From Octopus sinensis (lineage: Eukaryota), in NCBI RefSeq assembly GCF_006345805.1, contig NC_043008.1:55056001-55120000 (forward strand): DNA of 64,000 nt. The letters are read 5' to 3'. Positions 3,673-27,376 of this stretch are shown in pieces. Within the stretch, counting starts at the first letter, position 1. Every line of letters begins with the position of its first letter. Made by a program: the position numbers and the translations under genes. Under the pieces are notes generated by a model. It had not been told where the DNA came from. It worked only from the letters and a program-made list of their open reading frames with translations, and made no database searches.

Positions 3673-6600
3673 TTAATCTGGATTATTCAGACATGGGTAC
3701 TTGGGCTTCTTTGTAATGAATGAAAGAACTCCAGAGCAATCGAGATATCTGTTAAACACGTAAGAGTTTGAAATTAATATTTTCCTTCCTTGCAATGGAC
3801 GTGCTATTCCATCAATGTTTTCATAGGTCTGTTCAAGGAATTGCATTAAGCGGAAAACATAACGATTCCCATCTTTTCGAAGGGCTCCATAAAGACTGAA
3901 TTTATCTCCAGAGTTTATGAGGTTACGAGAGGATTCTGGAAAATTATAATAGACTTTCTCAGATTTGACCAGTTTGTTAACATATTCTTTGTCTGTTGTT
4001 GAAGACTGCATTCCTTGAGCTGATTCACTACATACTTTTATAGTATCTTTGCAAAACCTAGATGTAGATGCAACTGCTTTATTATTGCTAGAATTGTTGT
4101 CAAGACCGGATTCAGTTTTTTCTTCACAAACATACTCTCCTTCACAAATATTTTCCCTTCCTTGGGACTTTTGTGTCCTGTCTTTCTTCTGGGCCTGTTT
4201 CATTGGGAAGCCATCTGCAGCATATGAACTAGTATTTTCTGACTTATCCATTAGGTCATCAGATCTGTCTTGGTCTGCATTTTGACTTGAATCAATTTGA
4301 TTTTTCTTTCTGTTACCAAGAAAATTCTTGCTATTTAAGTTAGTACTTTTTTTCTTTTGGGAGGTACCAGGTTTGTCAAATTTCTTTGCAGTTTTCCCAA
4401 CATATTTTTTAACACTTATATTATTATTTTGACTTTTGTCAAGAGTACTTCTTAAAGCATTTGAGTTGGTGCTAATTTTATCTGAAGAGGAACTCCTTGA
4501 TGTTTGCGAAGAATGACTACTGCTTGATTTTGAAAGAGCACGTGCAGAATCAGACTCATTCCTAATTACCGTAGTCGCTTGAGATCTAGACGATTCATTC
4601 GATGTCTCAGTTAAAGCAACATCACTTTCATACCTGGATTGTTGAGATGAGACTACATACGAATCTCTGGGTTGAATTCCAGCTGGAAAATCCGCCAATG
4701 ATGATTGAGTGCGAGAACTTCTACTAAGCTCATCAAGGACTTCACCAACAGAAGTGTTAGTGTCCTGCCTAATAGATCTGCCACTTGATATTTCTGATAA
4801 TGGTCTATGTGAGGTGGATCTTGATGTCGCTGAACTGGGAATATTTTCTCGACTGGATATCTGACTTTGTTGCTCTCTCATTGAACTGGGGCTACCCTCT
4901 CTCCCAGATATCTCACTCTGCTGACCCGTCATTGTACCAGGAGTACTTTCTCTTCCAGATATCTGACTTCGTTCGTCTCTCATTGAACTGGGGGTACCCT
5001 CTCTTCCAGATATCTGGCTTCGCTGCTCCATCATTGAACCAGGAATACTCTCCCTTCCAGATAAATGACTTCGTTGGTCTGTCGTTGAGCTGGGTGTACT
5101 CACTCTTCCAGATATCTGACTTCGTTGGTCTCTCATTGAACTGGGAGTACTCTCTCTTCCAGATATCTGACTTCGTTGGTCTGTCATTGAACTGGAGGTA
5201 CCCTCTCGCTCGAATATCTGACTCCGCTGGTCTGTTACTGAACCAGGAATACTCTCTCTTCCAGATATCTGACTTCGTTGGTCTCTTATTGAAGTGGGAG
5301 TACTCACTTTTCCAGATATCTGACTCCGCTGGTCCATCATAGAACCAGGTATACTCTCTCTTCCAGATATCTGACTTCGTTGAAATGGTGTTGAACCTAC
5401 GATGCTTTCATTTCTAGATAATTGTCTCCATTCATTTGATACAGGAGTGTAAACTATCTCACTTCCAGATTTCTGGCTCATTTGGTCAGCTACTGAACTT
5501 GGAACACTCTCACCTTGGAATACTTGACTGCGGTGACCTGGAACTGAACTAAAACTACTCTCTCTTTCAGACACCTGTCTCCGTTGGTCTGTTACTGGAG
5601 TAAAAATACGCTCTTTCTCAGATATTTGACTTCCTTGATCTGGTAATGAACTGACAAAACTTTCCTTTCCAGTAATCTGGCTCCGCTGGTCAGACGTTGA
5701 ACTGTGAATACTCGCTCTATCAGATATATGACTCCCTAGCTCAACTATTAAACTGGGAGTACTCTCTCTTGCAGATATATATGTCAGATGAGGTGCTATA
5801 GTTTGGCGAATATTCTCACTTTCAGATATCTGACTCCGCTGGTTTGGTTCTGATCTTTGAATACTCTCTCTTCTGAGAAATACCTGACTCCACTGTTCTG
5901 GTACCGAACCAAGAATACTCTCTCTATGAAAGACCTGATTCTCCTGGTCTTGCATAGAACTAAATGTATTCCATCTATCTGATATCTGACTGCGCTGGTT
6001 GGGAATTGAAGTACGAGCACTTTCTCCTCTAGATATCTGAAGCTGTTCATCGGGAGTAGATTGAAGCATACACTCAGATACGGATGCCTCACTCGGTTGA
6101 TCTACTATTGAACTAAGACTACTCTCACTTCTAGATGTTTGTGTCCGTTGTTCTGGTGTTGAACTAAAAATACTATCTCTTTCTGATACGTGACTGTGCT
6201 GCTCTGAACTGGGAATACTCTCTCTTCCAGATATCTGACTTCGTTGGTCTCTCATTGAACTAGGAATACTCTCTCTTCCAGATATCTGACTTCGTTGGTC
6301 TCTCATTGAACTAGGAATACTCTCTCTTCCAGATATCTGACTTCGTTCGTCTCTCATTGAACTACGAGTACTCTCTCTTCCAGATATCTGACTTCGTTCG
6401 TCTCTCATTGAACTGGGAATACTCTCTCTTCCAGATATCTGACTTCGTTCGTCTCTCATTGAACTGGGAATACTCTCTCTTCCAGATATCTGACTTCGTT
6501 CGTCTCTCATTGAACTGGGAATACTCTCTCTTCCAGATATCTGACTTCGTTCGTCTCTCATTGAACTGGGAATACTCTCTCTTCCAGATATCTGACTTCG

Positions 6601-9600
6601 TTCGTCTCTCATTGAACTACGAGTACTCTCTCTTCCAGATATCTGACTTCGTTCGTCTCTCATTGAACTGGGAATACTCTCTCTTCCAGATATATGACTT
6701 CGTTCGTCTCTCATTGAACTACGAGTGCTCTCTCTTCCAGATATCTGACTTCGTTCGTCTCTCATTGAACTGGGAATACTCTCTCTTCCAGATATCTGAC
6801 TTCGTTCGTCTCTCATTGAACTACGAGTACTCTCTCTTCCAGATATCTGACTTCGTTCGTCTCTCATTGAACTGGGAATACTCTCTCTTCCAGATATCTG
6901 ACTTCGTTCGTCTCTCATTGAACTAGGAGTACTCTCTCTTCCAGATATCTGACTTCGTTCGTCTCTCATTGAACTACGAGTACTCTCTCTTCCAGATATC
7001 TGACTTCGTTCGTCTCTCATTGAACTGGGAATACTCTCTCTTCCAGATATCTGACTTCGTTCGTCTCTCATTGAACTGGGAGTACTCTCTCTTCCAGATA
7101 TCTGACTTCGTTCGTCTCTCATTGAACTACGAGTACTCTCTCTTCCAGATATCTGACTTCGTTCGTCTCTCATTGAACTACGAGTACTCTCTCTTCCAGA
7201 TATCTGACTTCGTTCGTCTCTCATTGAACTGGGAGTACTCTCTCTTCCAGATATCTGACTTCGTCGGTCTGTCATTGAACTGGGAATACTCTCTCTTCCA
7301 GATATCTGACTTCGTTCGTCTCTCATTGAACTGGGAATACTCTCTCTTCCAGATATCTGACTTCGTTCGTCTCTCATTGAACTGGGAATACTCTCTCTTT
7401 CAGATATCCGACTTCGTTCGTCTCTCATTGAACTGGGAATACTCTCTCTTCCAGATATCTGACTTCGTTCGTCTCTCATTGAACTGGGAATACTCTCTCT
7501 TCCAGATATCTGACTTCGTTCGTCTCTCATGGAACTGGGAATACTCTCCCTTCCAGATATCTGACTTCGTCGGTCTCTCATCGTACTGGGAATACTTTCT
7601 CTTCCAGATATCTGACTTCGTCGGTCTGTCATAGAACTGGGAGTACTCTCTCTTCCAGATGTCAGACTTCGCTGGTCTGTCATTGAACTGAGGGTACTCT
7701 CCTTTCCAGATATCTGACTACGTCTGTCTATCATTGAACCAGGAATACCTTCTCTTCCTGATATTATGCTCGGTTCTGTTGTTAAACTACGAATAATCTC
7801 TCTTCTAGACGTATAACTCCGTTCGTCTGGACCAGACTGAACACTAATATCGCTTTTAGATAACTGACGTTCTTCAGAGAAAGGTCTCTCAGTACTCACT
7901 GTTTCATAAAGTCGGCTGCGTTGGTCTGGTATGGAACGAACAATACTTTCTCTCTCTGTTATTCGACTTCCCTGTTCAGGTATAAAAGTTTTAAATGATG
8001 CACTTTCATCATCCCGACTCCTTTGACTTAATACATTACTATGCATTCTTTCTCTTTCAAATATTTCGCTCCTTTGGAGAGACAGTGGACTTTGAATACT
8101 TTCTCTTCCACTTATCTGCTCGTCTGGTACAGAAATACGTAAGCTCTCAGTTCGCGATGGTTTACTCCATTGTTCTGGTACTGTACTAACTCTACTATGT
8201 TTTCCAGATATTTGACTCAATTCCTCTGAGAGCGAACTTCGAATAGATGGTGGTTCAGATATATGGCTTTCTTGATCTTGTACAGAACTCAGATTGCTGT
8301 CGCTTCTCGATAACGTACTGTGCCTTAGAGACACACGGCTATCTTGTCCAGTAATTTGACTGTGTTGATCTCCCATTTCCCTAGAGATACTCTGTATTCT
8401 TGTTATTGAACTAGGCTGTTCTTCTTTTGAACTATGTATTCTCTCCCTTCCAGATGATATACTTCGTTGGTCAGCCATTGAACTGAGAATACTCTCTCGT
8501 CCAGATATCTGACTACGTTGGTCTCTCATTAAACTAGGAATACTCTCTCTTTCAGATACATGACTCACTTCGACTGGCGGAGAACTAAGAATGTTCTCCT
8601 TACCAGATAATTGACTTAGCTGATGGGCTATTGAAGTCGGAATGCTCTCCTTTTCTGATATGCGACTCCGCTTATCTAACGGAGATATGAGACTTCTCAT
8701 ACTTCGGGATATTTGACTACGAATATCGGCTATTGAACTGCGAATAGTGCGTTTGCTAGGTGTTGCGCTTCGTTGGTCTGCCGTAGAGACTTCCATTCTC
8801 TCTCTTTCTGATATTTGACTCCACTTTTCCGGTGTCAAACTGTGGATTTTCTCTCTCTCTGATATCGGACTCTGAATGTCAGATACAGGAGATTGAGTAA
8901 CCTCTTTTTCTGATAAACGGCTTCGATGAGCAGCTATTATACTGGGAATACTCTCTTTATCAGTTACATCACTCCGCCGGTCTGCTTCCGAAGTGGAAAT
9001 ACTCATTGAACCGGATATCTGACTCCGATCATCTGATGTTAATCCGATAGTACTCTCCCTTTCCGATAACCGACTTCGTTGTTCTGTGAATGTACTGGGG
9101 ACAGACTCTCTTTCAGTTACATCACTCCGACGGCTGGATGTTGAACTTCGAACACTCCTTGTTCTGGACATTTCACTTCGCCCATCTGATATCGAACTGA
9201 CAGTGCTCTCTCTTTCTGATAATCTACTTCTATGATCTGGCATCCATACTTCACTCCGTCGGTCTGTCATTGAACTCGGAGTACTCATGGTTCCCGATGT
9301 ATAACTTCGATCATCTGATATCGATCTGATAGTACTATCTCTTTCGGATAATCGACTTCGTTGATCTGCTATAGTACTGGGAATACTCTCTCTTTCAGAT
9401 ACTTCACTCCGACGGTCCGTTATTGAACTGGGAATACTCATTGTTCCAGATATCTGACTTCGCTGATCTGCTATCGATCTGACAGTACTCTCTCTTTCGG
9501 ATAATCGACTTCGTTGATCCGTCATTGTACTGGGGATACTTTCTCTTTCAGATACCTCACTCCTGCGGTCTGTTATTGAGCTGGGAATACTCATCGTCTC

Positions 9601-12600
9601 CGCTATCTGACTTCGCCCCTCTGATATCGATCTGACAGTACTCCCTCTTTCGGATAATCGACTTCGTGGATACGTCATTGTACTAGGAATACTTTCTCTT
9701 TCAGATATTTCGGTGCGACGGTCCGTTATTGAACTGGGAATACTCATTGTTCCAGATATCTGACTCCGACCATCTGATATCGATCTGATAGTACTCTCTC
9801 TTTCGGATAATCGACTTCGTTGATCCGTCATTGTACTGGGGATTCTCTCTCTTTCAGATACTTCACTTCTGCGGTCCGTTATTGAACTGGGAATACTCAG
9901 TGTTCCAGATAACTGACTTTGCGCATCAGATATCGATCTGACAATACTCTCTCTTTCGGATAATCGACTTCGTTGATCCATCATTGTACTGGGAATACTT
10001 TTTCTTTCAGATACTTCACTCAGACGATCCTTTATTGAACTGGGAATACTCATTGTTCCCGATATCTGACTTCGCTGATCTGATATCGATCTGATAGTGC
10101 TCTCTCTTTCGGATAACCGACTTCGTTGATCCGTCATTGTACTGGGAATACTTTCTCTTTCAGATATTTCGGTGCGACGGTCCGTTATTGAACTGGGAAT
10201 GCTCATTGTTCCCGATATCTGACTTCGTCCATCTGATATCGATCTGATAGTACTCTCTCTTTCGGATAATCGACTTCGTTGATCTGCTATAGTACTGGGA
10301 ATACTTTCTCTTTCAGATATTTCGGTGCGACGGTCTGTTATTGAGCTGGGAATACTCATCGTTCCCGATATCTGACTTCGCTGATCTGATATCGATCTGA
10401 TAGTACTCTCTCTTTCGGATAATCGACTTCGTTGATCCTTCATTGTACTTGGAATACTTTCTCTTTCAGATACTTCACTCCTGCGGTCCGTTATTGAACT
10501 GGGAATACTCAGTGTTCCAGATATCTGACTCCGACCATCTGATATCGATCTGATAGTACTCTCTCTTTCGGATAATCGACTTCGTTGATCCGTCATTGTA
10601 CTGGGAATACTTTCTCTTTCAGATATTTCGGTGCGACGGTCCGTTATTGAACTGGGAATACTCATTGTTCCCGATATCTGACTTCGCTGATCTGTTATCG
10701 ATCTGATAGTACTCTCTCTTTCGGATAATCGACTTCGTTGATCCGTCATTGAACTGGGAATACTTTCTCTTTCAGATATTTCGGTGCGACGGTCCGTTAT
10801 TGAACTGGGAATACTCAAGGTTCCAGATATCTGACTTCGACCATCTGATATCGATCTGATAGTACTCTCTCTTTCGGATAATCGACTTCGTTGATCCGTC
10901 ATTGAACTGGGAATACTTTCTCTTTCTGATATTTCGGTCCGCCGGTCTGTTATTGAACTGGGAATACTCATTGTTCCCGATATCTGACTTCGACCATCTG
11001 ATATCGATCTGATAGTACTCTCTCTTTCGGATAATCGACTTCGTTGATCCGTCATTGTACTAGGAATACTTTCTCTTACAGACATTTCGGTCCGACGGTC
11101 CGTCATTGAACTAGGAATACTCATTGTTCCCGATATCTGACTTCGCTGATCTGATATCGATCTGATAGTACTCTCTCTTTCGGATAATCGACTTCGTTGA
11201 TCCGTCATTGTACTAGGAATACTTTCTCTTACAGACATTTCGGTCCGACGGTCCGTTATTGAGCTGGGAATACTCATTGTTCCCGATATCTGACTTCGAC
11301 CATCTGATATCGATCTGATAGTACTCTCTCTTTCGGATAATCGACTTCGTTGATCCGTCATTGAACTGGGAATACTTTCTCTTTCTGATATTTCGGTCCG
11401 CCGGTCTGTTATTGAACTGGGAATACTCATTGTTCCCGATATCTGACTTCGACCATCTGATATCGATCTGATAGTACTCTCTCTTTCGGATAATCGACTT
11501 CGTTGATCCGTCATTGTACTAGGAATACTTTCTCTTTCTGATATTTCGGTCCGCCGGTCTGTTATTGAACTGGGAATACTCATTGTTCCCGATATCTGAC
11601 TTCGACCATCTGATATCGATCTGATAGTACTCTCTCTTTCGGATAATCGACTTCGTTGATCCGTCATTGTACTAGGAATACTTTCTCTTTCTGATATTTC
11701 GGTCCGCCGGTCTGTTATTGAACTGGGAATACTCATTGTTCCCGATATCTGACTTCGACCATCTGATATCGATCTGATAGTACTCTCTCTTTCGGATAAT
11801 CGACTTCGTTGATCCGTCATTGAACTGGGAATACTTTCTCTTTCTGATATTTCGGTCCGCCGGTCTGTTATTGAACTGGGAATACTCATTGTTCCCAATA
11901 TCTGACTTCGACCATCTGATATCGATCTGATAGTACTCTCTCTTTCGGATAATCGACTTCGTTGATCCGTCATTGAACTGGGAATACTTTCTCTTTCTGA
12001 TATTTCGGTCCGCCGGTCTGTTATTGAACTGGGAATACTCATTGTTCCCGATATCTGACTTCGCTGATCTGATATCGATCTGACAGTACTCTCTCTTTCG
12101 GATAATCGACTTCGTTGATCTGTCATTGAACTGGGAATACTTTCTCTTTCAGACATTTCGGTCCGACGGTCAGTCATTGAACTGGGAATACTCATTGTTC
12201 CCGATATCTGACTTCGTGGTCCTGAAATGGATGTGATAGTGCTTTCGCTTCCTGTTAATTGACTTCGTTGCTCTGTCATTGTACTAGGAGTACTCTTTCT
12301 TTCAGATACTGCACTTCGCCGGTCTATTATTGAACTGGGAATACTCATTGTTCCCGATATCTGACTGCGTGGACCTGAAATTGATGTGATAGTACTTTCG
12401 GTTCCTGATAATCGACTTGTTGGCTCTGTCATTGTTCTGGTCATACTCTCTCTTTCAGATACCGCACTCCGACGGTCTATTATTGAACTAGGAATACTTA
12501 ATGTTCCCGATATCTGACTTCGTGGACCTGATATGGATCTGATTGTACCTTCCCCTTCTGATAATCGACTTCGTTGGTCTTCTATTTTACTGGGAATACT

Positions 12601-18600: not shown

Positions 18601-21600
18601 CACTTCACTTAGTCGCTCCGTTACTGAACTGGGCGGGATACTCATCGTTCCCGATATCTGACTTCGCTGATCTGATATCGATCTGACAGTACTCTCTCTT
18701 TTTGATGATCGACTTCTTTGATCTGTTTTTGTACTGGGAATACTCTCTCTTCCAGATATTTGACTCCGCCGATCCGTTATTGAACTGGAGATACTCATCT
18801 TTCCCGATATCCGACTTCGCGCATCTGATATCGATCTGACAATACTCTCTCTTTCTGTTAATCGACTTCGCTGATCTGCTATTGTACTGGGAGTACTCCG
18901 TCTTCCAGATACTTCAGTTAGTCGCTCCGTTACTGAACTGGGGGGGATACTCATAGTTCCTGATATCTGACTCCGCTCATCAGATATCGAGCTGATAGTG
19001 TTCTCTCTTTCTGATAATCGACTTCCTTGATCTGCTTTTGTACTGGGAATACTTTCAGATATTTGACTCCATGGTTCCGTTATTATACTGGGAATACTCA
19101 TTGTTCCTGATATCTGACTTTGCTGATCTGGTATCGATTTGACAATACTCTCTCTTTCGTATAATCGACTTCGTTGATCTGCTATAGTACTAGGAATACC
19201 CTCTCTTTCAGACATTTCGGTCCGACGGTCCGTTATTGAACTGGGAATACTCTTTGTTCCCGATATCTGACTTCGCTGATCTGATATCGATTTGATAGTA
19301 CTCTCTCTTTCTGATAGTCGACTTCGTTGCTCTTGTATTGTACTAGGAATACTCTCTCTTTGATATATCTCACTTCGTTGTTCTGTAATACCTTCCTTTT
19401 CTGAAATCTGACTCCGTCGGTCATGTGTTGAACTAACTGTACTTTCACTTCCAGATATTTGACTTCTTTGTGCTATCGCTGAACTTGGTTTGCTCTCCCT
19501 TTGTGACATCTGACTCTTTTGGTCAACCTTTGGGCTTGGTGTTCTCTTTTTTACACTTATTCGACTCCGCCGGTCTGATTTCGTAGTTGTAGTACTGTCA
19601 CTCCTAGAAATTGGACTTCGTTTGTCTGTTATCGAACTAGGAGTACTCTTTCTTCCCAATATCTTTTTCCGTTGTTCACTTACCGAACTAGGAGTACTCT
19701 TTCTGCTAGATACCTGACTCCGCTTGTCACTAATTGAACTAGGCGTACTAGTACCATCTCTCACGGATCTCTGACTCCGCTGGTCAGTTGCTGAGCGAGA
19801 AGCACTCCTTGATGAGCTAGGACTACTCCTTATTTTGTCAGTTATTGTACTAGGAGTACTCTCTTTTCCAGATATTTGACTACGTTTATCCGGCATATAT
19901 CTAGGAGTAGTCTCTCTTGATGATGTCTGACTTCGTTGGTCTACCATTGAACCAGCGATACTTTCTTTTCCTGATATCTTGCTCTGCTGCTCTGTAACAA
20001 CACTGGGTGTACTTTCTCTTCCATATATAAGACTCTCTTTTTCAGTTATTGTACTATGAGTACTCTCTTTTCCAGATATCTTGCTTCGTTGGTCAATTAT
20101 AGATGTAGGTGTTCTCTGTCTTCCGGATATTTGACTCCGTTGGTCAATTATGGAACTCGGAGTACTTTCCCTTCCAGATATCTGACTACTTTGGTCAATT
20201 ATTGATGTAGGCGTTCTCTGTTTTCCAGATATCTGACTCCGCTGATCTGCAACAGAACTGCGAGAACTCTCACTAAGGAAACTATGGCTTAGATGGGATG
20301 GTACTGCACTGTGAATACTTTCCCTTCCTGAAATCTGACTTTGTTTTATTGTTGAACTCGGAACACTTTCGCTTGGTGGTGTTCGACTCAGCTGGTCTGT
20401 TGCAGAGCTAGTATAACTTTCACTCTCATGCATCTGACTTCGCTGATATGGAACCGAACTAATTATACTCTCTCTTTCTGGTGATAAGATTGGTTGCTCT
20501 GATATAGAACTAGGAGTGCTTGCTCTTGGCGATATTTCACTTTGTTCTCCTATTGCTGAACTAGGAATACTCTCTCGCCCAGATATTTGACTTCGCTGGT
20601 CTGCGATTGAACTTCGAATTCTCTCTCGTACAGTAATTTGACTCTGCTGGTCGGCTACTGAACTGAGACTACTCTCTTTTTCTGACAATTGTACTTGTTG
20701 GTCAGCTATTGAACTAGGAGTACTCTCTCTTCCATATATCTGACTCCTCTGGTCAGCTACCGGACTGAGAATACTCTCTTTTTCTGATAACAGACTCTGC
20801 TCAGATGGCTTTGAAATGGCAATACTCTCTCGTCCTGACAACAGGCTTCGTTGATCTAGAACTGAACTGGGAATGCGACTCCGCTGATCTAGCAAACTAA
20901 GAACACTCTCTCTTCGTGATAATGGACTTCGTTGATCTGTTATTGAACTGAGAATGCTATCCTTTTTGTATACTTCACTCAGTCTGTCTGCCACTAGACT
21001 ATGTGCACTTTCTCTTGTGGACAACTTATCTAGATCTTCTGGTATCGAACTGTGTTTACTCTTTTGCCCAGTTAAAGAAATTGACCGTTCTCTCTCTAAA
21101 CCAAGCAATTCTCTCTCAGACATTTGTCTCTCAGTATCTGTGTAATACGGAGTCTGTATATCCAACAGTGATTTACTCTTTCTTTCTTCACTTAGCAGAT
21201 GCCTACTTTCTCTTGATAAGCTTCCTCTTATACTGTCAATCATCTGACCGCGTGTTTCAATGCCATACTTTGCTAATAAATCGTCTAAACTCTTTTTCTT
21301 TTCTCTTAGATCTAACAGATCTGTTACTGGCATGTATGGTTTTGTCTCTATGTCTGATTGTTGATCTCTGTCTCTCATTTCCAGATGTGACCTTTCTTGT
21401 GGGGATATACTGCTATATTGTTCTGTGACCGGAGGAGAAATTTCGGTAACTGTTGACGTTTGATCTGGCTGTTCTTGGAATGAAACAGCGTGAAGCTTTT
21501 CAGCAGATGGAATACTCGTTGTTACCGGTATCTGACTTCGTTCATCTGATATCGATCTGATAGTACCCTCTCTTTCGGATAATCGACTGGGAATACTTTC

Positions 21601-24600
21601 TCTTTCAGATATTTCGGTCCGACGGTCCATTATTGAACTGGGAATACTCATTGTTACCGGTATCTGACTTCGCTCATCTGATATCGATCTGATAGTGCCC
21701 TCTCTTTCTGATAATCGACTTCGTTGATCAGCTATTGTACTGGGAATACTCTCTCTTTCATATACTTCACGCCGCTGGTCCGTTATGGAACGCGGAACAC
21801 TCATTGTTTCAGATATCCGACTTCGCTGTTCTGTTATCGACCCGATAGCACCCTCTCTTTCAACAGATGGTTGACTTACTTGGTCTGTTAACAGGCTATA
21901 CACTTCCGATATATTATGCCGCGTGTCTCTCACTGTATCATACAGCATTGAAGCCTGCCTTTCAGGTGATGGAATATGCAGTTCTTCAAATACACCTCTT
22001 GAATCATATGTTGGTAGAGTTTCTTTGACATCCCCTATGTAAGTTTCACTTGGCCGTTGTTCAAAGGAACTCTCCACTGTATCTTTTCTGGATATTTGAC
22101 TTCGATGATCAACTGAAGAAGATCTCTTTCTCATACTTATTGGTTTTTGATCGTACATTGGTGAAGTCGGTGTTGTTATGTCATCTGGTGGTATAAAACT
22201 AACATCTACTTTTTTCGGTGCAAATATAGGTGTATCAAAAAAGGATACTCGATAGTGTCCCTTTTTCGATTGTTTTCTCTGTTGCGCTGCTATTGAAGTG
22301 GTTACTTTGTCTTTTTCAGATAATTTCCCATCTGAGTGCAGTTTGTACAGAGTATCTTTTACAGGAAATTGAGTCTCTGGCTCTACCATCGATTTGTACT
22401 TTCGTTCTTGTGTGGGTAACACGTCAAGTTGTTGACGTAATGGCGATTTTTCAAACTCGAAACAAGGTGCTGAAGCCGTGGAAGTCGACTGTTGAACTCC
22501 AGTAATGCGCTGCATCGTTTCCTCAGAAATTCTACTCGGCTGTCCCATGAAAATATCTTGAATCTCTTGGGTAGATAGTGGACTCATCTCTTCTTCTAAG
22601 GAGACAACTTGCATATCTTCACTACGCTGTCTACTTCGTAATTGTTCTAAGGAGATATGCTGCGTTTCCTTTCTAGACAATTGACTCGGCTCTTGTTCTA
22701 ACGAAGATGTTTGCTTCTGCTCGAAAATTGGTTCAATTGGCGGTTGTTCTAAGGAAATAACCATAGATATCGGACTTCGTTGTTGTTCTCTGGAGAAATG
22801 CTGAAAGCCATCGGAAGATCGTCGAACGAACTGTTGATCAAATGCAACGTCCGATGGTTCTTTGGTGTATGTGGGAGATGCTGGGGGGTATAACATAGCA
22901 TCTGGGACTCCTTTCAGTGTGGCTGGCTGTTCTTTCTGATCCGGTGAAATGACTGATCTTTGTAGTATATCACTTCTTGTGATTTCACTTGGATGCATCC
23001 TGCTTGAAGTATACGGCCTTTCCGAAGTTAATGGCATTGTAGTCGATGGGTGTCTTGATGAAACATACTCCCTCTCCTGTACGGGAAACGCACTCATAGA
23101 TTTTACTAGAGGCATGCACTCAACTCCTTGAGCGGAAACATCAGAAAAGCTACCTAACTTAGCTGGTGATGCTCTACCTCTCTCTTCACCTAACGGTCCA
23201 ACTGGCACTTCTCTGGATTCTTTACTCGATGACACCCGTGATTTTCCTTTGAATCCAAAACGCCGTTTACCTTCTTTGCTGCTGCACACTTGTTCTTCAA
23301 AATCTGCCTCTGTCCAGGAAACACGTGGTGTGCTCCGTTTTGGTTTTGACAGCTTTTTTTTAAAGATGCTGGTCTTAGACGGCTTTTTCCCAACTTCTCT
23401 ACAGGAAATATCACTCATATATTCACTCATTTCAATTTCAGAGAGAGTTGTTGCGTCTACATTGCCACGCTCAATCCTTCTTTTGTCAGTATCCTCTGGT
23501 GGCTTCTCTTGAGGAACATCGAGAATTAATTCTGATAGTGGAAACTGAATTATACCTTTCATAGATTCACTGGTTGGTTGGCATGGAGGCTCAAACGATG
23601 ATGAACTAGTCTCGTGTCCTATAGAAGTACTATACGTCTGTCGTTTTGTCGATTTAGTCAACGGAAATGTTGATAATCTATCCCTCTTACCTTTCTGACT
23701 TTCTAGACTTTCTGATGACGTAGAATCCTTGTCAGTTCTCATGATATTAGCAAGCATGCTTTTAAATTTAGTCTTTGATCGATAGTCTTCTGAAGATTGT
23801 TTCTGTGATTTTTTCGACGGTTTGCAAATCGAATCTTCCCGACGTTTTGGTCTGCATACTCTTTTCCCATATTCATTTAATATAGCACTCCGTTTTTCTT
23901 CGATATGATCTGGCAATTCGGAGTGATCTGATGATGAATAATGACATGTTGTTTTTCGTAAAGATTCGTGCAAACTACGCTCTTCGTCACCTTCGTGAAT
24001 CAGTTGGATATTTGTTTCTAATTTATTCCACATTATATCTGATTTCTTTTTATTTATATATTTTCGTACTAAAAGCCAATGAATGCCAATAAATGGCAAA
24101 TAAAAGAAAAAAAAGAAATTCATAATCCCCATTTGCTTTTGTGACAGAGCACGCACTCTTCGCTTCGTTTTGGGGTGCATTGGGTAACCGTCTTTATTAT
24201 ATTTTACAGCTTTATATTGAAGATCTTTATCGAAATATTTACACTGATAGTTGCTTTTTATAAAAACACACAGCCCTGCTTCGCCAATAGATACCGGAAA
24301 ACAAAATCCAAAAATGAGTTTTAACATATTAAGTATCATAAGAAAAAGTAAAACTATACCGAAAATAACTAATGTTTCGTCTCGGAAAATAGCCGTGACC
24401 GGAGAATGGATCATTTTAGCTTTTTTCACTTCACACGGATATGGTGGATCACAACTACATTTACAACCAACTAGACATAAACAGAGTTTGTTTCTTTTTA
24501 AAATAAGGTATTTTGACTTAACTGTTTTCTGATCTTCATTCCATAATTCTATTACACACTGCACTGGAAATTGTAATTTGGCAGTATTTCCAGGAATAAT

Positions 24601-25953
24601 GCCTCCTTCAATAGATTCAAACTTGTGAAAAAATATCACTGTTTCTCCTTGAAATGGGGTCAACGTATAAGTCTTGAACTGTCTATCAGGTTCACAGTTT
24701 AATAATACTTTAAAGTTTCCTGTAATTAGTCCTATGTTAATTACATTTATTCCAATCTCATATTGGTGGCCACTATCTGAAAATGGGTGGCCGTACAAGG
24801 TTCCAATGGATCCTTCACTTAATAATGGAATTGCAGAAGGAAGAAGATCTTTGTTAAGATTTATTATAATATCTAGCTGTGCCCGAACTGAATGCCTTTT
24901 ATTCTCTACAAATAACAACGATTTATTTGATACCCAACCGGGAACTTTTCCAGTATAAGGAGCCATTGGCTTGGTAAAATGCGATAGGAAATATTTTGAT
25001 CTGTCTGACTCCACATTATTGTTCAATTTCTTCAAATTATCTTCAAGCCAGAAACTCAATGGTTGATTCTTGAAACAAGTTTTGACAAAGGATTTTGTAC
25101 AACGGTCGGTCTTTTTCAAAACGGCGCCGGCAACAATTCCTATTGCTCCACAAGATGTTCCTTTTAAATCAAAATATTTTTTCTTAATAAGCAAGTACTC
25201 ATTAACACCTTTTATGTCCGTTTTTGCCTGTGGATTTCTATTGTTTAGGGCCGAGTTTGCAACGGGTATCAATAAATAATTTAAATTTGAACAAATTATC
25301 TGTCTACAACTAAAGTTGGTCTGGTGAAGAACGCGGGCCGTGAAATAAAGGTCGTCGTCTCTCTTCTCGATAGTTTTGCCGTTGACAAGAAAACGATTGC
25401 TTTGTGCGACACTTTGCACTACTTTTACAGCGTGTTTTTCTTTTCTAAAGACCTCTACCATAAGACTTTGAATAATTATAGGGTTGCCGAGAGTATTAAC
25501 AGAATACCATAAAGGATCATATAGAATACAATGCATCTGGAGACTTTCAGGACAGCAGTATCCTTTTGTTTTGTACGACTTACCACCTACATCGGACTGT
25601 TGGCAGAAAGTTCCGGCACTTTTATAATCACCATCACAGGTTTGGTTGTAAGTCATTTCGTATGGTTGATTGTTGACAAATTGCAAAAATTGGAGGGGAT
25701 AACCAACAAGTAAATCGCTGAAGTAAACGCGCAGAGTTACTGAATCTTCGAAAAAAAAAATTTTGTTTGTGGCTAAATCAATCATGGTTTCAACTGTGTA
25801 GAAACGACCTAATTTCCAGTCGTTGTAATTATGTATATCTGCCACAAGTTGCAGTGTTAGATACCGATGGGAATTTGAACTTCGCTGTTCCTCGTCTGAA
25901 TGTTGTAGAAGGACGGTTAAAACATATGTGCTTAGCAATGTCTGTAGCTTCAT
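3673..25953 (-). CDS. HAP2: Giant intronless HAP2/GCS1-like fusexin with a ~6800-aa repetitive Ser/Arg/Glu tail (7426 aa)
   Basis: The ORF track starts at a TTG (26130); the first in-frame ATG is at 25953, giving MKLQTLLSTYVLTVLLQHS, a plausible signal peptide. HAP2 hallmarks: YPLQFLQFVNNQPYE..C..C..GYCC..HC..YDPLWY; HAP2-GCS1 (PF10699)-like motif YLLIKKKYFDLKGTSCGAIGIV..RC..CFKNQPLSFWLED (~25039-25197); Ig-like domain III ending in CLCLVGCKCSC; hydrophobic anchors at ~24298-24375 and ~24067-24132. The frame is open for 22281 nt. Confidence 0.88.
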   Translation of the reverse strand: MKLQTLLSTYVLTVLLQHSDEEQRSSNSHRYLTLQLVADIHNYNDWKLGRFYTVETMIDLATNKIFFFEDSVTLRVYFSDLLVGYPLQFLQFVNNQPYEMTYNQTCDGDYKSAGTFCQQSDVGGKSYKTKGYCCPESLQMHCILYDPLWYSVNTLGNPIIIQSLMVEVFRKEKHAVKVVQSVAQSNRFLVNGKTIEKRDDDLYFTARVLHQTNFSCRQIICSNLNYLLIPVANSALNNRNPQAKTDIKGVNEYLLIKKKYFDLKGTSCGAIGIVAGAVLKKTDRCTKSFVKTCFKNQPLSFWLEDNLKKLNNNVESDRSKYFLSHFTKPMAPYTGKVPGWVSNKSLLFVENKRHSVRAQLDIIINLNKDLLPSAIPLLSEGSIGTLYGHPFSDSGHQYEIGINVINIGLITGNFKVLLNCEPDRQFKTYTLTPFQGETVIFFHKFESIEGGIIPGNTAKLQFPVQCVIELWNEDQKTVKSKYLILKRNKLCLCLVGCKCSCDPPYPCEVKKAKMIHSPVTAIFRDETLVIFGIVLLFLMILNMLKLIFGFCFPVSIGEAGLCVFIKSNYQCKYFDKDLQYKAVKYNKDGYPMHPKTKRRVRALSQKQMGIMNFFFFFYLPFIGIHWLLVRKYINKKKSDIMWNKLETNIQLIHEGDEERSLHESLRKTTCHYSSSDHSELPDHIEEKRSAILNEYGKRVCRPKRREDSICKPSKKSQKQSSEDYRSKTKFKSMLANIMRTDKDSTSSESLESQKGKRDRLSTFPLTKSTKRQTYSTSIGHETSSSSFEPPCQPTSESMKGIIQFPLSELILDVPQEKPPEDTDKRRIERGNVDATTLSEIEMSEYMSDISCREVGKKPSKTSIFKKKLSKPKRSTPRVSWTEADFEEQVCSSKEGKRRFGFKGKSRVSSSKESREVPVGPLGEERGRASPAKLGSFSDVSAQGVECMPLVKSMSAFPVQEREYVSSRHPSTTMPLTSERPYTSSRMHPSEITRSDILQRSVISPDQKEQPATLKGVPDAMLYPPASPTYTKEPSDVAFDQQFVRRSSDGFQHFSREQQRSPISMVISLEQPPIEPIFEQKQTSSLEQEPSQLSRKETQHISLEQLRSRQRSEDMQVVSLEEEMSPLSTQEIQDIFMGQPSRISEETMQRITGVQQSTSTASAPCFEFEKSPLRQQLDVLPTQERKYKSMVEPETQFPVKDTLYKLHSDGKLSEKDKVTTSIAAQQRKQSKKGHYRVSFFDTPIFAPKKVDVSFIPPDDITTPTSPMYDQKPISMRKRSSSVDHRSQISRKDTVESSFEQRPSETYIGDVKETLPTYDSRGVFEELHIPSPERQASMLYDTVRDTRHNISEVYSLLTDQVSQPSVEREGAIGSITEQRSRISETMSVPRSITDQRREVYERESIPSTIADQRSRLSEREGTIRSISDERSQIPVTMSIPSSIMDRRTEISERESIPSRLSEREGTIRSISDERSQIPVTTSIPSAEKLHAVSFQEQPDQTSTVTEISPPVTEQYSSISPQERSHLEMRDRDQQSDIETKPYMPVTDLLDLREKKKSLDDLLAKYGIETRGQMIDSIRGSLSRESRHLLSEERKSKSLLDIQTPYYTDTERQMSERELLGLERERSISLTGQKSKHSSIPEDLDKLSTRESAHSLVADRLSEVYKKDSILSSITDQRSPLSRRESVLSLLDQRSRIPSSVLDQRSLLSGRESIAISKPSEQSLLSEKESILSPVADQRSQIYGRESTPSSIADQQVQLSEKESSLSSVADQQSQITVRERIRSSIADQRSQISGRESIPSSAIGEQSEISPRASTPSSISEQPILSPERESIISSVPYQRSQMHESESYTSSATDQLSRTPPSESVPSSTIKQSQISGRESIHSAVPSHLSHSFLSESSRSSVADQRSQISGKQRTPTSIIDQSSQISGRESTPSSIIDQRSQISGRQRTPTSIIDQRSKISGKESTHSTITEKESLIYGRESTPSVVTEQQSKISGKESIAGSMVDQRSQTSSRETTPRYMPDKRSQISGKESTPSTITDKIRSSPSSSRSASRSATDQRSQRSVRDGTSTPSSISDKRSQVSSRKSTPSSVSEQRKKILGRKSTPSSITDKRSPISRSDSTTTTKSDRRSRISVKKRTPSPKVDQKSQMSQRESKPSSAIAQRSQISGSESTVSSTHDRRSQISEKEGITEQRSEIYQRESIPSTIQEQRSRLSERESTIKSISDQRSQISGTKSIPSSITDRRTEMSEREGIPSTIADQRSRLYERESIVKSIPDQQSQISGTMSIPSIITEPWSQISESIPSTKADQGSRLSERENTISSISDERSQISGTMSIPPSSVTERLTEVSGRRSTPSTIADQRSRLTERESIVRSISDARSRISGKMSISSSITDRRSQISGRESIPSTKTDQRSRSSKRESTVRSISDQRSQISGTMSIPPSSVTERLSEVSERRSTPSTIADQRSRLSERESTIRSISDERSQISGTMSTPASSVTERLSEVSERRSTPSTIADQRSRLSERESTLRSISDERSQISGTMRIPPSSVTDRRSEVSERRSTPSTIADQRSRLSERESTIRSITDQRSQISGTMSIPPSSVTERLSEVSERRSTPSTIADQRSRLSERESTIRSISDERSQISGTMSIPSSITDRRSQISERESIPSTKVDERSRLSERESTIRSITDQRSQISGTMSIPASSVTEQLSEVSERRSTPSTIADQRSRLSERESTLRSIYDERSQISGTMSIPPSSVTERLSEVSERRSTPSTIADQRSRLSERESTLRSIYDERSQISGTMSIPPSSVTERLSEVSERRSTPSTIADQRSRLSERESTIRSISDERSQISGTMSIPVSSVTERLSEVSERESTPSTISDEQRRSSERESTIRSISDERSQISGTTSIPSSIRDWPSQVTQRKSVLSWMPDQRSRLPERESMVRSTYDQRSEISEKTYFPISTTDWRSEISERHRIFSMTPEQRSRLQETESIVRSIYDQRSQISGIMSIPSSITDRLSEVSERESISSKIPDERSRLSETESTIRSISDLRSQISDTMSIPSSIMDRRSEVYTRESIPSTIETQRSLSSERESSFRSTPDQRSEIPGRMSIPSSITDRRSEVSERESIPSSLADQRSRLSERESTIRSMSDERSQISGTMSIPSSITDRRSQISERESIPSTIADQLSRLSERESTIRSISDQRSQISGTMSIPSSITDRRSEESERESIQSKLADQRSRLSERESTIRSISDERTKISGTMSIPSSITDRRSEVSERESIPSTIIDQLSRLSERESTVRSISDQRSQISGTMSIPSSLTDRRTEISERESIPSTIMDQRSRLPERESTVRSISDQRSQISGIMSIPSSITDRRTEISERESIPSTIADQRSRLSERESTVRSISDQRSQISGIMSIPSSITDRRTEISERESIPSTIADQRSRLSERESTVRSISDGRSQISGTMSIPSSITDRRTEISERESIPSTIADQRSRLSERESTVRSISDQRSQISGTMSIPISVTDRKSEVTERESIPSTIADQRSRLSERESTIRSISDGRSQISGTMSIPSSITDRRTEISERESIPSTMTDQRSRLSERESTVRSISDQRSQISGTMSIPSSITDRRSEVSERESIPSTIADQRSRLSERESTIRSISDQRSQISGTMSIPSSITDRRTEISERESIPSTIADQRSRLSERESTIRPTSDGPSQISGMISIPSSITDRRSEVSERESIPSTIADQRSRLSERESTVRSISDEQIQISGMTSIPSSITDRRSEVSERGSIPSTMTDQRSRLSERESRIRSISDGRSQISGTMSIPSSITDRRSEIFERESYPSTVADQRSRLSERESTVRSISDDRSQISGTMSIPSSITYHRSEVSERESIPSTMTDQRSRLSERESRIRSISDGRSQISKTMSIPSSITDRRSEIFESESYPSTIADQRSRLSERESTIRSISDERSKISGTMSIPSSVTDRRSEVTERESIPSTIADQRSRLSERESTIRSISDRPSQISGTMSIPSSIIDRRSEVSERESIPSTIADQLSRLSERESTIRSISDQRSQISGTMSIPSSITDRRSEISERESIPSTIADQLSRLSERESTIRSISDGRSQISETMSIPSSVTDRRSEVSERESIPSTIADQRSRLSERESTIRSISEGRSQISGTMSIPRSITDRRSEVSERESTPSTISDERSRLSERESTIRSASVEESKTSEQISLPSSRTDRGSEISERESVPSTIIHQGSRLSESESTFRSKSDLQSQISAAESIPSSIRSGSGVVSERAGIVRFLPDQRRRLSERETPVRSIADQRSQIFARLHIPSSVSEWQSEASEREISPRAISDERSRLSERESTISSIPDERSQIAETASVPSSVMEVRSEVYERARIVSTIPDQQSRLSERESIIRSIYDQRSRISRTMSTPSSISDRLSEIFERESIPSKIEDQRSRLSEGEGTIRSISGPRSQISGTLSIPSSIIDRRSAVSERESMTRTMTEPTSRLSGTESTITSISGPRSQISGTMSIPSSIIDRRSAVSERKSTPSTMTEQRSQLTGSESTITSISGPRSQISGTMSIPSSMTDRRTEMSERESIPSSMTDQRSRLSERESTVRSISDQRSQISGTMSIPSSITDRRTEISERESIPSSMTDQRSRLSERESTIRSISDGRSQILGTMSIPSSITDRRTEISERESIPSSMTDQRSRLSERESTIRSISDGRSQISGTMSIPSSITDRRTEISERESIPSTMTDQRSRLSERESTIRSISDGRSQISGTMSIPSSITDRRTEISERESIPSTMTDQRSRLSERESTIRSISDGRSQISGTMSIPSSITDRRTEISERESIPSSMTDQRSRLSERESTIRSISDGRSQISGTMSIPSSITDRRTEMSVRESIPSTMTDQRSRLSERESTIRSISDQRSQISGTMSIPSSMTDRRTEMSVRESIPSTMTDQRSRLSERESTIRSISDGRSQISGTMSIPSSITDRRTEISERESIPSSMTDQRSRLSERESTIRSISDGRSQISGTLSIPSSITDRRTEISERESIPSSMTDQRSRLSERESTIRSITDQRSQISGTMSIPSSITDRRTEISERESIPSTMTDQRSRLSERESTIRSISDGRSQISGTLSIPSSITDRRSEVSERESIPSTMKDQRSRLSERESTIRSISDQRSQISGTMSIPSSITDRRTEISERESIPSTIADQRSRLSERESTIRSISDGRSQISGTMSIPSSITDRRTEISERESIPSTMTDQRSRLSERESTIRSISDQRSQISGTMSIPSSIKDRLSEVSERKSIPSTMMDQRSRLSERESIVRSISDAQSQLSGTLSIPSSITDRRSEVSERERIPSTMTDQRSRLSERESTIRSISDGRSQISGTMSIPSSITDRRTEISERESIPSTMTYPRSRLSERGSTVRSISEGRSQIAETMSIPSSITDRRSEVSERESIPSTMTDQRSRLSERESTVRSIADQRSQISGTMSIPSSITDRRSEVSERESIPSTIADQRSRLSERDSTIRSISDDRSYTSGTMSTPSSMTDRRSEVWMPDHRSRLSERESTVSSISDGRSEMSRTRSVRSSTSSRRSDVTERESVPSTFTEQRSRLSERESTIGLTSDDRSQISGSMSISTSEADRRSDVTDKESIPSIIAAHRSRLSEKEVTQSPVSDIQSPISEREKIHSLTPEKWSQISERERMEVSTADQRSATPSKRTIRSSIADIRSQISRSMRSLISPLDKRSRISEKESIPTSIAHQLSQLSGKENILSSPPVEVSHVSERESIPSLMRDQRSQISGRESILSSMADQRSISSGRERIHSSKEEQPSSITRIQSISREMGDQHSQITGQDSRVSLRHSTLSRSDSNLSSVQDQESHISEPPSIRSSLSEELSQISGKHSRVSTVPEQWSKPSRTESLRISVPDEQISGRESIQSPLSLQRSEIFERERMHSNVLSQRSRDDESASFKTFIPEQGSRITERESIVRSIPDQRSRLYETVSTERPFSEERQLSKSDISVQSGPDERSYTSRREIIRSLTTEPSIISGREGIPGSMIDRRSQISGKESTLSSMTDQRSLTSGRESTPSSMTDRRSQISGRESIPSTMRDRRSQISGRESIPSSMRDERSQISGRESIPSSMRDERSQISGRESIPSSMRDERSRISERESIPSSMRDERSQISGRESIPSSMRDERSQISGRESIPSSMTDRRSQISGRESTPSSMRDERSQISGRESTRSSMRDERSQISGRESTRSSMRDERSQISGRESTPSSMRDERSQISGRESIPSSMRDERSQISGRESTRSSMRDERSQISGRESTPSSMRDERSQISGRESIPSSMRDERSQISGRESTRSSMRDERSQISGRESIPSSMRDERSQISGRESTRSSMRDERSHISGRESIPSSMRDERSQISGRESTRSSMRDERSQISGRESIPSSMRDERSQISGRESIPSSMRDERSQISGRESIPSSMRDERSQISGRESIPSSMRDERSQISGRESTRSSMRDERSQISGRESIPSSMRDQRSQISGRESIPSSMRDQRSQISGRESIPSSEQHSHVSERDSIFSSTPEQRTQTSRSESSLSSIVDQPSEASVSECMLQSTPDEQLQISRGESARTSIPNQRSQISDRWNTFSSMQDQENQVFHRESILGSVPEQWSQVFLRRESIQRSEPNQRSQISESENIRQTIAPHLTYISARESTPSLIVELGSHISDRASIHSSTSDQRSQITGKESFVSSLPDQGSQISEKERIFTPVTDQRRQVSERESSFSSVPGHRSQVFQGESVPSSVADQMSQKSGSEIVYTPVSNEWRQLSRNESIVGSTPFQRSQISGRESIPGSMMDQRSQISGKVSTPTSIRDQRSQISGRESIPGSVTDQRSQIFEREGTSSSMTDQRSQISGRESTPSSMRDQRSQISGRVSTPSSTTDQRSHLSGRESIPGSMMEQRSQISGREGTPSSMRDERSQISGRESTPGTMTGQQSEISGREGSPSSMREQQSQISSRENIPSSATSRSTSHRPLSEISSGRSIRQDTNTSVGEVLDELSRSSRTQSSLADFPAGIQPRDSYVVSSQQSRYESDVALTETSNESSRSQATTVIRNESDSARALSKSSSSHSSQTSRSSSSDKISTNSNALRSTLDKSQNNNISVKKYVGKTAKKFDKPGTSQKKKSTNLNSKNFLGNRKKNQIDSSQNADQDRSDDLMDKSENTSSYAADGFPMKQAQKKDRTQKSQGRENICEGEYVCEEKTESGLDNNSSNNKAVASTSRFCKDTIKVCSESAQGMQSSTTDKEYVNKLVKSEKVYYNFPESSRNLINSGDKFSLYGALRKDGNRYVFRLMQFLEQTYENIDGIARPLQGRKILISNSYVFNRYLDCSGVLSFITKKPKYPCLNNPD
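6210..7740 (-). repeat. Homogeneous coding tandem array, 51-bp unit (SGRESIPSSMRDERSQI), about 30 copies
   Basis: The 17-aa unit can be read directly in the translation, with near-identical DNA units. Confidence 0.95.
9230..19370 (-). repeat. Coding higher-order array, 153-bp unit (3 x 51 bp) with a 156-bp variant block at ~17300-18960
   Basis: Unit SERESTIRSISDQRSQI-SGTMSIPSSITDRRTEI-SERESIPSTIADQRSRL. The variant adds one codon (IPPSS/IPASS/IPVSS). Degenerate zones lie at ~12230-13300 and ~16650-17300. Confidence 0.95.
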
Positions 25954-26372
25954 AATTCCACCATAATTAATGAAATTTAAATCGTCAACAATATTTGATT
26001 GGATGAGCGAGACAGAGGAATATAGAAAAATACAACATGAAGAAATATATAATTGTATATATACCGAATTATGCAAATAAGCACACGAGAAATGAAAACC
26101 AAAAAGCTTACTGATTTTATATATCTTCAAAAAGCGGGATTCTTATCTATTATGTTCATTTTAATATCCATCCTTCATGAAAATGTCAGACAGTTGGCAA
26201 TATCGCGTTTGTTTAGCGTCATTCTTTTTGAAACAACCTATTTCTTCTCAACGCTGTTACTTTGAATTTGACTCCCTGTTGATAAAGATCGGTTCTGATT
26301 AAATGTACACCATGGATTATTATTACTGATTTCAACATCGGTGGGGTAGATACCGGAAAGGAGTCATTAGTT
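25887..26372. repeat. 5' flank and signal-peptide tract nearly identical to 46049-46535
   Basis: By-eye alignment gives about 11 differences in ~490 bp. Confidence 0.9.

Positions 26373-26639: not shown

Positions 26640-26890
<251 letters not shown>

Positions 26891-27342: not shown

Positions 27343-27376
<34 letters not shown>

Follow-up and report, generated by a model that had tools for sequence, protein, structure and literature searches.

The window analysed here is a 64,000-nt stretch of the Octopus sinensis genome, lying at positions 55,056,001-55,120,000 of contig 12 in the 2.72-Gb assembly (13,516 contigs; GCF_006345805.1) in which our genome searches were made. On its reverse strand lies one giant open reading frame (ORF) of 7,426 codons that encodes HAP2/GCS1, to our knowledge the only gamete fusogen common to different eukaryotic kingdoms. 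As far as we know, the role of HAP2 in bilaterian animals is almost unstudied, and no paper on a cephalopod HAP2 was found in the literature searched. We consider it likely that the giant ORF is the sole full-length HAP2/GCS1 gene of the genome and a vertically inherited mollusc orthologue, in which an array of some 300 short repeats sits inside a tail of otherwise normal plan.

The open reading frame and its HAP2 ectodomain

The frame starts with the ATG at 25953, ends with the TAA at 3673-3675 and is a genuine 7,426-residue HAP2 gene frame. An earlier sequence-only reading of this stretch had described an uninterrupted frame of 22.3 kb, which our counts bore out: no stop codon interrupts the giant ORF, whereas the two remaining sense frames contain 452 and 470 and the antisense frames 303-511 each; from base composition, ~490 would be expected. 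A TATAAAA-like element can be read in the sequence ~165 nt upstream of the ATG, inside the 5' flank. The coding sequence and its putative control regions are as follows.

3673..25953, minus strand: giant HAP2 coding sequence, one uninterrupted exon of 7,426 codons plus stop, delimited by the stop counts in each frame
25954..26423, minus strand: 5' flank, putative promoter and 5' untranslated region, ~85% identical by blastn to the flank of a second, partial HAP2 copy in the window
3483..3488, minus strand: AATAAA, candidate polyadenylation signal ~185 nt past the stop codon

The Pfam family PF10699 (HAP2-GCS1) matched aa 57-484 of the ORF with 87 bits (cut-off 27.4) and an E value of 1.4e-24, covering profile positions 32-464 of 515; the genome-level search gave 82 bits. 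A HMMER scan of 1.84 billion representative proteins returned 129 matches to the HAP2 part of the ORF, and all the named matches that we looked up among them were animal or choanoflagellate HAP2-type proteins, including 'hapless 2-like' proteins of Pecten, Lineus, Tubulanus, Uloborus and Ornithodoros and a 'GCS1/HAP2 domain-containing protein' of Mytilus. We modelled residues 1-640 with AlphaFold2 (AF2) from a 40-sequence alignment (A2), obtaining a mean predicted local distance difference test score (pLDDT) of 77.6. The eight best matches of this model in a Foldseek search of the PDB were HAP2 chains (E = 2.7e-23 to 1.6e-20), the top entries (7s0k, 6dbs, 5mf1 and 5ow3) being HAP2 of Cyanidioschyzon, Chlamydomonas and Arabidopsis; archaeal Fsx1, hantavirus Gc and EFF-1 ranked after them. 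According to AF2 and Foldseek, the predicted ectodomain has the class II three-domain fold of the solved HAP2s (Chlamydomonas 5MF1/6E18/6DBS, Arabidopsis 5OW3, Cyanidioschyzon 7S0K; Foldseek E = 1e-20 to 3e-23), with which it shares 13-16% sequence identity, the conserved Glu, the PF10699 Gln and most cysteines. Judged by profile and predicted fold together, the N-terminal part of the giant ORF is HAP2/GCS1, as the sequence-only reading had proposed.

The equivalent of Chlamydomonas E126 (in VNNQPYE), the signature Gln (in KNQP, the Q379 equivalent) and the ij-loop signature are retained. The terminal CxCxxxCxC of domain III, also pointed out in the earlier reading, is present as CLCLVGCKCSC; its residues C491, C493, C499 and C501 are invariant in the 40-sequence alignment together with C268, C285 and C293, and Q297 and C497 are near-invariant. 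An N-terminal hydrophobic helix (aa 2-18), the ectodomain and a transmembrane (TM) helix (aa 518-551) follow one another in a type I layout.

25897..25953, minus strand: predicted signal peptide MKLQTLLSTYVLTVLLQHS, aa 1-19, an AF2 hydrophobic helix at 2-18, identical in the second copy; role putative
24424..25896, minus strand: HAP2/GCS1 ectodomain, aa 20-510, class II fold by PF10699, AF2 and Foldseek
24451..24483, minus strand: domain III/stem motif CLCLVGCKCSC, aa 491-501, from cysteine invariance in alignment A2

The conserved C-terminal domain

The opposite end of the ORF encodes a second conserved part.

3676..3990, minus strand: conserved C-terminal globular domain, aa 7322-7426 (VYYNF...FSLYG...YPCLN), by phmmer and AF2

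In phmmer searches (E = 1e-25 to 3e-9), this domain proved to be homologous to the extreme C-terminus of the HAP2s of Solemya, Pecten, Mytilus, Lineus, Tubulanus, Lingula and Ptychodera. It matched 9 distinct HAP2s (12 sequences with isoforms), each 0-25 residues from the C-terminus, from bivalves, nemerteans, a brachiopod and a hemichordate, all of them ordinary-sized proteins of 540-1,160 aa. The animal HAP2 subfamily with this C-terminal domain is defined from the present alignment and is not a curated family. Ten positions are invariant in the alignment (N36, S52, G55, F66, Q74, L86, P116, C120, L121 and N122), and the conserved FSLCG of the relatives is FSLYG in the giant HAP2. The AF2 model of the domain (pLDDT 88, predicted template modelling score 0.78) is a small mixed alpha/beta fold, mostly beta, for which we found no Pfam family and no fold neighbour in the PDB (best Foldseek E = 0.49). 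The domain is single-copy in the genome.

A whole-genome search with the 841-aa HAP2 of Solemya velum gave three matches only: the start of the giant ORF was matched by residues 180-677, the second copy by residues 281-677, and the end of the giant ORF by residues 741-841. Since the flanking Solemya residues match both ends of the ORF, the gap of ~63 aa that separates the membrane module from the C-terminal domain in Solemya corresponds to ~6,700 residues in the giant HAP2. The last ~105 residues are homologous to the C-termini of ordinary HAP2s, which places the repeat array inside a normal tail; on these alignments, both ORF ends belong to one ancestral protein. The HAP2s of Solemya velum (KAL5009314.1, 841 aa) and Pecten maximus (XP_033735139.1, 886 aa) have the same signal peptide, PF10699 domain, domain III cysteine motif, membrane module (TM helix, 55-aa loop and second helix) and VYYN...YPCLN domain as the giant HAP2, and belong to the same mollusc clade.

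The repeat array

The region between the membrane module and the C-terminal domain was divided with Tandem Repeats Finder (TRF) and a hidden Markov model (HMM) of the repeat unit into the following segments.

22111..24066, minus strand: linker free of repeats and rich in S/E/K/P, aa 630-1281, plotting as disordered by charge and hydropathy; its first ~160 aa can be aligned with the second copy
4831..22110, minus strand: repeat array, aa 1282-7041, 5,760 aa, by TRF and unit HMM; net charge +17
9246..19361, minus strand: higher-order array, 66 copies of a 153-nt (51-aa, three-unit) repeat; TRF, 85% matches and 0% indels
4831..7764, minus strand: most homogeneous sub-array, ~58 copies of a 51-nt unit (RDERSQISGRESIPSSM); TRF period 51
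3991..4830, minus strand: non-repetitive S/K/T/D/N-rich segment, aa 7042-7321

Between 4831 and ~20800, TRF detected repeat periods of 51, 153 and 306 nt. The 17-aa unit HMM found 302 units in aa 1282-7041 (estimated 300-330), spaced by exactly 17 aa in 206 cases, with the consensus D-x-R-S-x-I-S-E-R-E-S-I-P-S-x-I-x. The 51-aa higher-order repeat, DRRSEISERESIPSTIA / DQRSRLSERESTIRSIS / DGRSQISGTMSIPSSIT, fills the central 10 kb of the array, where the identity of adjacent 153-nt units ranges from 0.61 to 1.0; the sub-array at 4831..7764 is probably the youngest amplification. The window contains no N's. Because the longest exact repeat inside the array is 301 nt and neighbouring units are 61-100% identical, the array looks resolved and not like an assembly duplication.

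The array consists of 25% S, 14% R, 11% I (10.6%), 10% E and 8% T, with one Cys and three N-x-S/T sequons, which agrees with the Ser/Arg/Glu/Ile tandem-repeat tail of the sequence-only reading. The further description of this tail as mixed-charge, disordered and RxxS-rich was supported in its first two parts only, the disorder as a prediction from charge and hydropathy. The fraction of charged residues is 0.30 with a kappa of 0.07, indicating well-mixed charges, and the mean hydropathy of 0.389 falls below the boundary of 0.414, on the disordered side of the plot. R-x-x-S/T, in contrast, is depleted (202 in the array vs 241 +/- 11 in composition-matched shuffles), as is S-x-D/E (40 vs a shuffle mean of 212); the enriched motifs are RS (325 vs 202), R-x-S/T (350 vs 251) and S-x-x-D/E (413 vs 203). 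The Ser and Arg contents, the enrichment of RS and the position on the disordered side recall RS-domain proteins such as SRRM2. Unlike these, the array has no Pfam homology, is depleted in SR, balances its charge with Glu/Asp, contains 11% Ile and is joined to a membrane protein.

We searched the genome with the repeat, and all 64 matches lay inside the giant ORF; a genome-wide satellite or transposon as the source of the repeat was rejected on this basis. No relative of the array was found in Pfam or, using a 500-aa segment, in a word index of 5.8 billion proteins. Word-indexed searches with residues 1-700 or the first 800 aa of the protein likewise gave no match, and all of these searches missed the window's own proteins too. 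A Ploopntkinase3 match within the array (28.7 bits against a 27-bit cut-off) was rejected as an artefact of repeats and composition.

We compared 50 in-register 153-nt units with their consensus, taking the expectation from the observed mutation spectrum. The differences were distributed 191/168/405 over codon positions 1/2/3. Codons with a single change were synonymous in 52% of cases, compared to 26% expected, and there were no nonsense changes compared to ~22 expected. The pairwise ratio of nonsynonymous to synonymous differences (pN/pS) was 0.37 in frame; reading these alignments in the other two sense frames raised it to 1.20 and 1.01. Common descent of the repeat units means that these counts do not represent independent events, a limitation that leaves the ratios and the frame controls untouched. 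These results strongly support the proposal, made in the sequence-only reading, that the tail is translated and under selection, in this case purifying selection on the protein. The coding-type constraint, together with the presence of both ORF ends in one ancestral protein, makes an untranslated or neutrally drifting array unlikely.

Gene structure and descent

The HAP2 gene of Solemya velum extends over 44,955 bp (within JBHNWI010000646.1, 70392186-70439140) and is divided into at least 17 coding exons, of which 12 encode the ectodomain and 3 the C-terminal domain, compared to the single exon that holds the coding sequence of the giant gene. Neither profile searches nor searches with the Solemya protein found a multi-exon HAP2 elsewhere in the 2.7-Gb genome. 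Since complete intron loss is what retroposition yields, the giant gene probably became intronless through retroposition.

In a maximum-likelihood tree, the two copies in the window were sisters (100/100), joined next by P0003 (100/100) and then grouped with bivalves (96/99); long stems of 1.6 and 1.17 substitutions per site precede this lineage. By this tree, the giant HAP2 is vertically descended within molluscs. The sequence-only reading had suggested a protein about ten times the usual HAP2 size in a probable cephalopod; the size holds, and the position inside the molluscs is consistent with the host. A viral or transposon origin of the fusexin was rejected, given that the tree nests the protein in molluscs and that the animal-HAP2-specific C-terminal domain is present.

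P0003, a HAP2 of 1,163 aa, is the nearest relative found (36% identity) and has the same membrane module and C-terminal domain. Its tail measures only ~530 aa and carries ~15 tandem units of ~11 aa (T-G-K-Q-K-E) that are unrelated to the repeat of the giant HAP2. It lies on Logan contigs of ~4.2 kb that have the same ends in three runs (ERR14857104, ERR12370320 and ERR12370321) and are transcript-like. Tandem repeats recur in HAP2 tails across lineages (P0003, P0005 and P0010).

The giant gene is preceded, 20 kb upstream, by the second HAP2 copy.

43720..46115, minus strand: second, partial HAP2 copy, by PF10699, ORFs and blastn

It reaches from 470 bp of 5' flank (85% identity) through ectodomain and membrane module into ~170 aa of tail, and lacks both the array and the C-terminal domain; a 1-bp deletion at ~45420-45440 splits its frame. 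The two copies share 51-61% amino acid identity, with a joint ratio of nonsynonymous to synonymous substitution rates (dN/dS) of 0.54-0.67. The terminal branch is 0.59 for the second copy and 0.21 for the giant copy, and a relative-rate count with P0003 as outgroup gave 66 and 45 unique changes, respectively (chi-square 3.97). Apportioning by branch suggests a dN/dS of ~0.3 for the giant copy and ~0.9 for the second, which on this sequence evidence is most likely a decaying partial tandem duplicate or a pseudogene. NCBI and UniRef list its downstream ORF as a protein of 561 aa (P0002). The order of events appears to have been a retrocopy, loss of the parent gene, amplification of the repeat in place, and a partial tandem duplication followed by decay.

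Deletion of the cd loop

The cd loop of Chlamydomonas HAP2 is a 40-aa segment that lies between the conserved segments 159-167 and 208-219, bears two fusion loops and has R185 and C190 as its sole conserved residues (PMC5332557). R185 pairs with the strictly conserved E126, and the changes R185A, R185Q and deletion of 184-186 abolish fusion and liposome binding (PMC5332557). In the giant HAP2 this loop is reduced to a short remnant.

25534..25551, minus strand: cd-loop remnant PESLQM, aa 135-140, replacing the ~40-aa cd loop with its fusion loops, Arg and C190

These are the only six residues between GYCC and HCILYDPLWYS, and the HMMER alignments to solved HAP2s pass over chain residues 148-185 of 6e18 and 139-191 of 7s0k (38-53 residues). 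Most of the sequences that span the cd-loop region in the 40-sequence alignment carry ...R-G-GQxC...SAHCL, and the bivalve HAP2s retain the loop with RGGQDC, whereas the giant HAP2 does not. The family feature of a cd loop with an essential Arg is therefore missing from the giant HAP2, in which the Glu partner is kept. Two framework cysteines went with the loop along with the R185 equivalent, so that the HAP2 cysteine framework of the sequence-only reading is present in most of its cysteines and absent in these two. The same deletion occurs in the second copy (PESVQIR) and in P0003 (PHVLEA), which dates it before the expansion of the octopus array and shows that it was tolerated.

The tick HAP2s P0024 (Rhipicephalus) and P0056 (Ornithodoros) have a much shorter cd loop in which GQNC is kept and the conserved Arg is absent. 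Given these sequences, the conserved cd-loop Arg may have been lost more than once in animals.

Two interpretations of the octopus ectodomain can be considered: either the hydrophobic hairpin turn P-x-x-[LV]-x-[MIA] would act as a minimal membrane-insertion motif, or the canonical fusogen role would have been lost. The latter leads to a possible, if not the favored, explanation of the locus, namely that the giant HAP2 is translated whole, is no longer a membrane fusogen and has been re-used as an adhesion, structural or scaffold protein with the tail as its main selected part. The reduction of the cd loop from ~40 to 6 aa, with loss of the Arg whose mutation abolishes fusion and of two framework cysteines, is consistent with such re-use, as are the age and tolerance of a deletion shared with the second copy and P0003, the very long stems to this lineage, and the Pfam score of 87 bits compared to 257 for Solemya. 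However, the protein has kept its three-domain fold, domain III cysteines and TM module as well as the ij-loop signature and the equivalents of E126 and Q379, and the remnant turn has two aliphatic residues in the giant HAP2, the second copy and P0003. Moreover, membrane-insertion motifs vary widely among HAP2s and include short loops (PMC6089408), and the genome contains no other HAP2 for the job.

Membrane module and orientation of the tail

The membrane anchors that the sequence-only reading had placed after the ectodomain were recovered as two hydrophobic helices in the AF2 model, at aa 518-551 and 605-633, joined by a conserved loop.

24298..24375, minus strand: transmembrane helix 1, aa 527-552, in AF2 helix 518-551 (pLDDT >90), conserved in 32 animal HAP2s
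24133..24297, minus strand: juxtamembrane loop of 55 aa, aa 553-607 (...GEAGLCVF...DGYPMHPKTKRRVR...), with conserved motifs and pLDDT >90
24067..24132, minus strand: second hydrophobic helix, aa 608-629, MGIMNFFFFFYLPFIGIHWLLV, in AF2 helix 605-633 (pLDDT >90); spanning or re-entrant

We tabulated this module in 32 animal HAP2s. The TM helix with its embedded Lys is conserved across them, the juxtamembrane loop (motif GxPxHPxTxxRVR) measures 55-56 aa in 29 of the 32, and the motif LNxxFFFxYP of helix 2 is found across animal HAP2s. A description of such a module was not found in the papers searched; in characterised HAP2s, one TM helix is followed by a short, unrelated tail, in contrast to the extra helix and giant tail of the octopus protein.

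The mean numbers of K+R and D+E in the animal HAP2s are 1.0 and 1.7 before TM helix 1, 8.6 and 7.4 in the loop, and 3.3 and 2.2 in the 15 residues past helix 2, and the positive-inside rule is not decisive for the side of the tail. Cysteine clusters occur directly past helix 2 in many arthropod HAP2s; a cytoplasmic cysteine motif of Chlamydomonas HAP2 is palmitoylated. Because of the K/R start and the arthropod cysteine clusters directly past helix 2, we read the tail as probably cytoplasmic, with helix 2 re-entrant or peripheral.

If helix 2 instead spans the membrane, the 6,800-aa tail would be extracellular, a Ser/Thr-rich and possibly O-glycosylated mucin-like brush on the sperm surface. 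We regard this as unlikely. Both helices are predicted with high confidence at membrane-spanning length, the module is conserved in animal HAP2s, Ser and Thr make up 33% of the array, and the tails of some relatives are S/T/P-rich (P0010), all of which would suit an extracellular brush. On the other hand, the K/R start and frequent cysteine clusters past helix 2 in the relatives are as at a cytoplasmic face, and the array is unlike mucins in having 30% charged residues and only 4.7% Pro. The C-terminal domain has also lost one of its two conserved cysteines (in FSLYG), arguing against a structural disulfide.

Splicing and assembly of the array

Another explanation is that most of the array is removed from the mRNA as an intron or exitron, leaving as the working protein an ordinary HAP2 of ~1,000 aa, in which the C-terminal domain would directly follow the N-terminal module. 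Relatives do join the two conserved ends by only ~60-530 aa (P0004 and P0003), and the support for a giant product comes from DNA only, the exact product being absent from the protein collection. Nevertheless, an intronic minisatellite would not give the excess of third-position differences, the pN/pS of 0.37 or the lack of stops where ~22 were expected. The frame is also held over 17 kb into the C-terminal domain, and the remainder of the gene is intronless. We consider removal of the array to be quite improbable.

Long tandem arrays are hard to assemble, and the frameshift in the neighbouring copy could be an assembly error or true decay, but an over-expanded or mis-joined array or a decaying, functionless relic is very improbable for the giant copy, with no gaps, a longest exact repeat of 301 nt, neighbours differing by 0-39% in structured sub-arrays that long reads can resolve, constraint signals within the array, and a short constrained branch.

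Other features of the window

Just upstream of the giant gene lie an (AT)n/(TATG)n stretch at 26655-26890 and a 1.45-kb (CATA)n microsatellite at 27305-28761. ORFs at 27217-28907 on both strands, with frames of 450-540 aa, were rejected as genes, being spurious frames of the (CATA)n microsatellite. From 29000 to 64000, the window contains many dispersed repeats resembling short interspersed nuclear elements, ~180-245 nt long, in both orientations and with 85-98% identity (for example at 29608-30050, 40909-41284, 48890-49277 and 62520-62899), and a 377-nt unit is present twice at 38631-39410. Searches for tRNAs and Rfam families over the whole window, these dispersed repeats included, were negative. 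The intronless structure, the second copy at 43720-46115, the conserved C-terminal domain and the cd-loop deletion did not figure in the sequence-only reading.

Proposed role and significance

We propose that the giant protein, a type I class II fusexin, serves as the species' working HAP2; we hold this with good confidence for its anatomy and translation and with less for its function. It keeps the ancestral animal layout of signal peptide, ectodomain, TM helix, 55-aa loop, second helix, variable linker and ~105-aa C-terminal domain. The linker, which is ~60-500 aa in relatives, has been inflated in place to ~6,700 aa by amplification of the 17-aa (51-nt) unit, an expansion of the tail by ~100-fold that includes higher-order repeats of 153 and 306 nt.

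Several points weigh against this proposal. The loss of the cd loop and of the R185 equivalent speaks against canonical fusogen activity. Helix 2, if a true TM segment as its modelled length would allow, could place the tail outside the cell, and an Ile content of 10.6% is high for a disordered region. Translation is deduced from the DNA, and splicing within the array is possible; the constraint was measured within this one genome, an orthologue from another octopod not having been recovered. The exact 7,426-aa product was not found in a collection of 15 billion proteins in which the ORF of the second copy is present, which suggests that public annotation may model the gene differently. With regard to retroposition, we saw neither a poly(A) remnant nor flanking direct repeats over the 800 nt past the stop or upstream of the start; an old retroposition would have lost such marks, and stepwise intron loss is also possible.

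In the proposed mechanism, the array would form a polyampholyte coil, rich in Ser, whose contour length would be ~2 micrometres (5,760 x 0.36 nm). The coil may tether the membrane-embedded ectodomain to a binding partner of the C-terminal domain, and it would offer hundreds of S-x-x-D/E sites, probably for acidophilic kinases; S-x-x-D/E is a motif of CK2-type kinases. At the sperm fusion site, the tail could then serve as a scaffold or a long spacer.

A more far-reaching version, which we advance tentatively and think rather doubtful, is that an intronless retrocopy replaced the ancestral fusogen in the cephalopod lineage, dropped the fusion loops and later, in octopus, gained a selected, micrometre-scale polyampholyte of ~5,800 residues between the membrane and the C-terminal docking domain, so that a fusexin was re-purposed as a giant membrane scaffold or structural element of sperm. 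Its place might be a long acrosomal or fusion-site apparatus of the sperm, in which fusion would be driven by the new minimal insertion motif or by another protein.

The HAP2 family and the repeat-bearing tails of relatives are known or can be seen in databases; the combination of a selected giant tail, intron loss and deletion of the fusion loops is unusual. The locus presents a clean case of gene evolution, apparently by retrocopy, loss of the parent, repeat amplification and decay of a duplicate. It also illustrates that automated annotation can miss or shorten such genes, the giant product being unlisted and the ORF of the broken neighbouring copy listed. As an extreme case of a HAP2 tail, with an expansion of ~100-fold under purifying selection and a conserved end domain, it bears on the function of the HAP2 cytoplasmic tail. 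Furthermore, a lineage that lacks the Arg essential in the alga and conserves the rest of the fusogen offers a test of how much of the membrane-insertion apparatus is dispensable.

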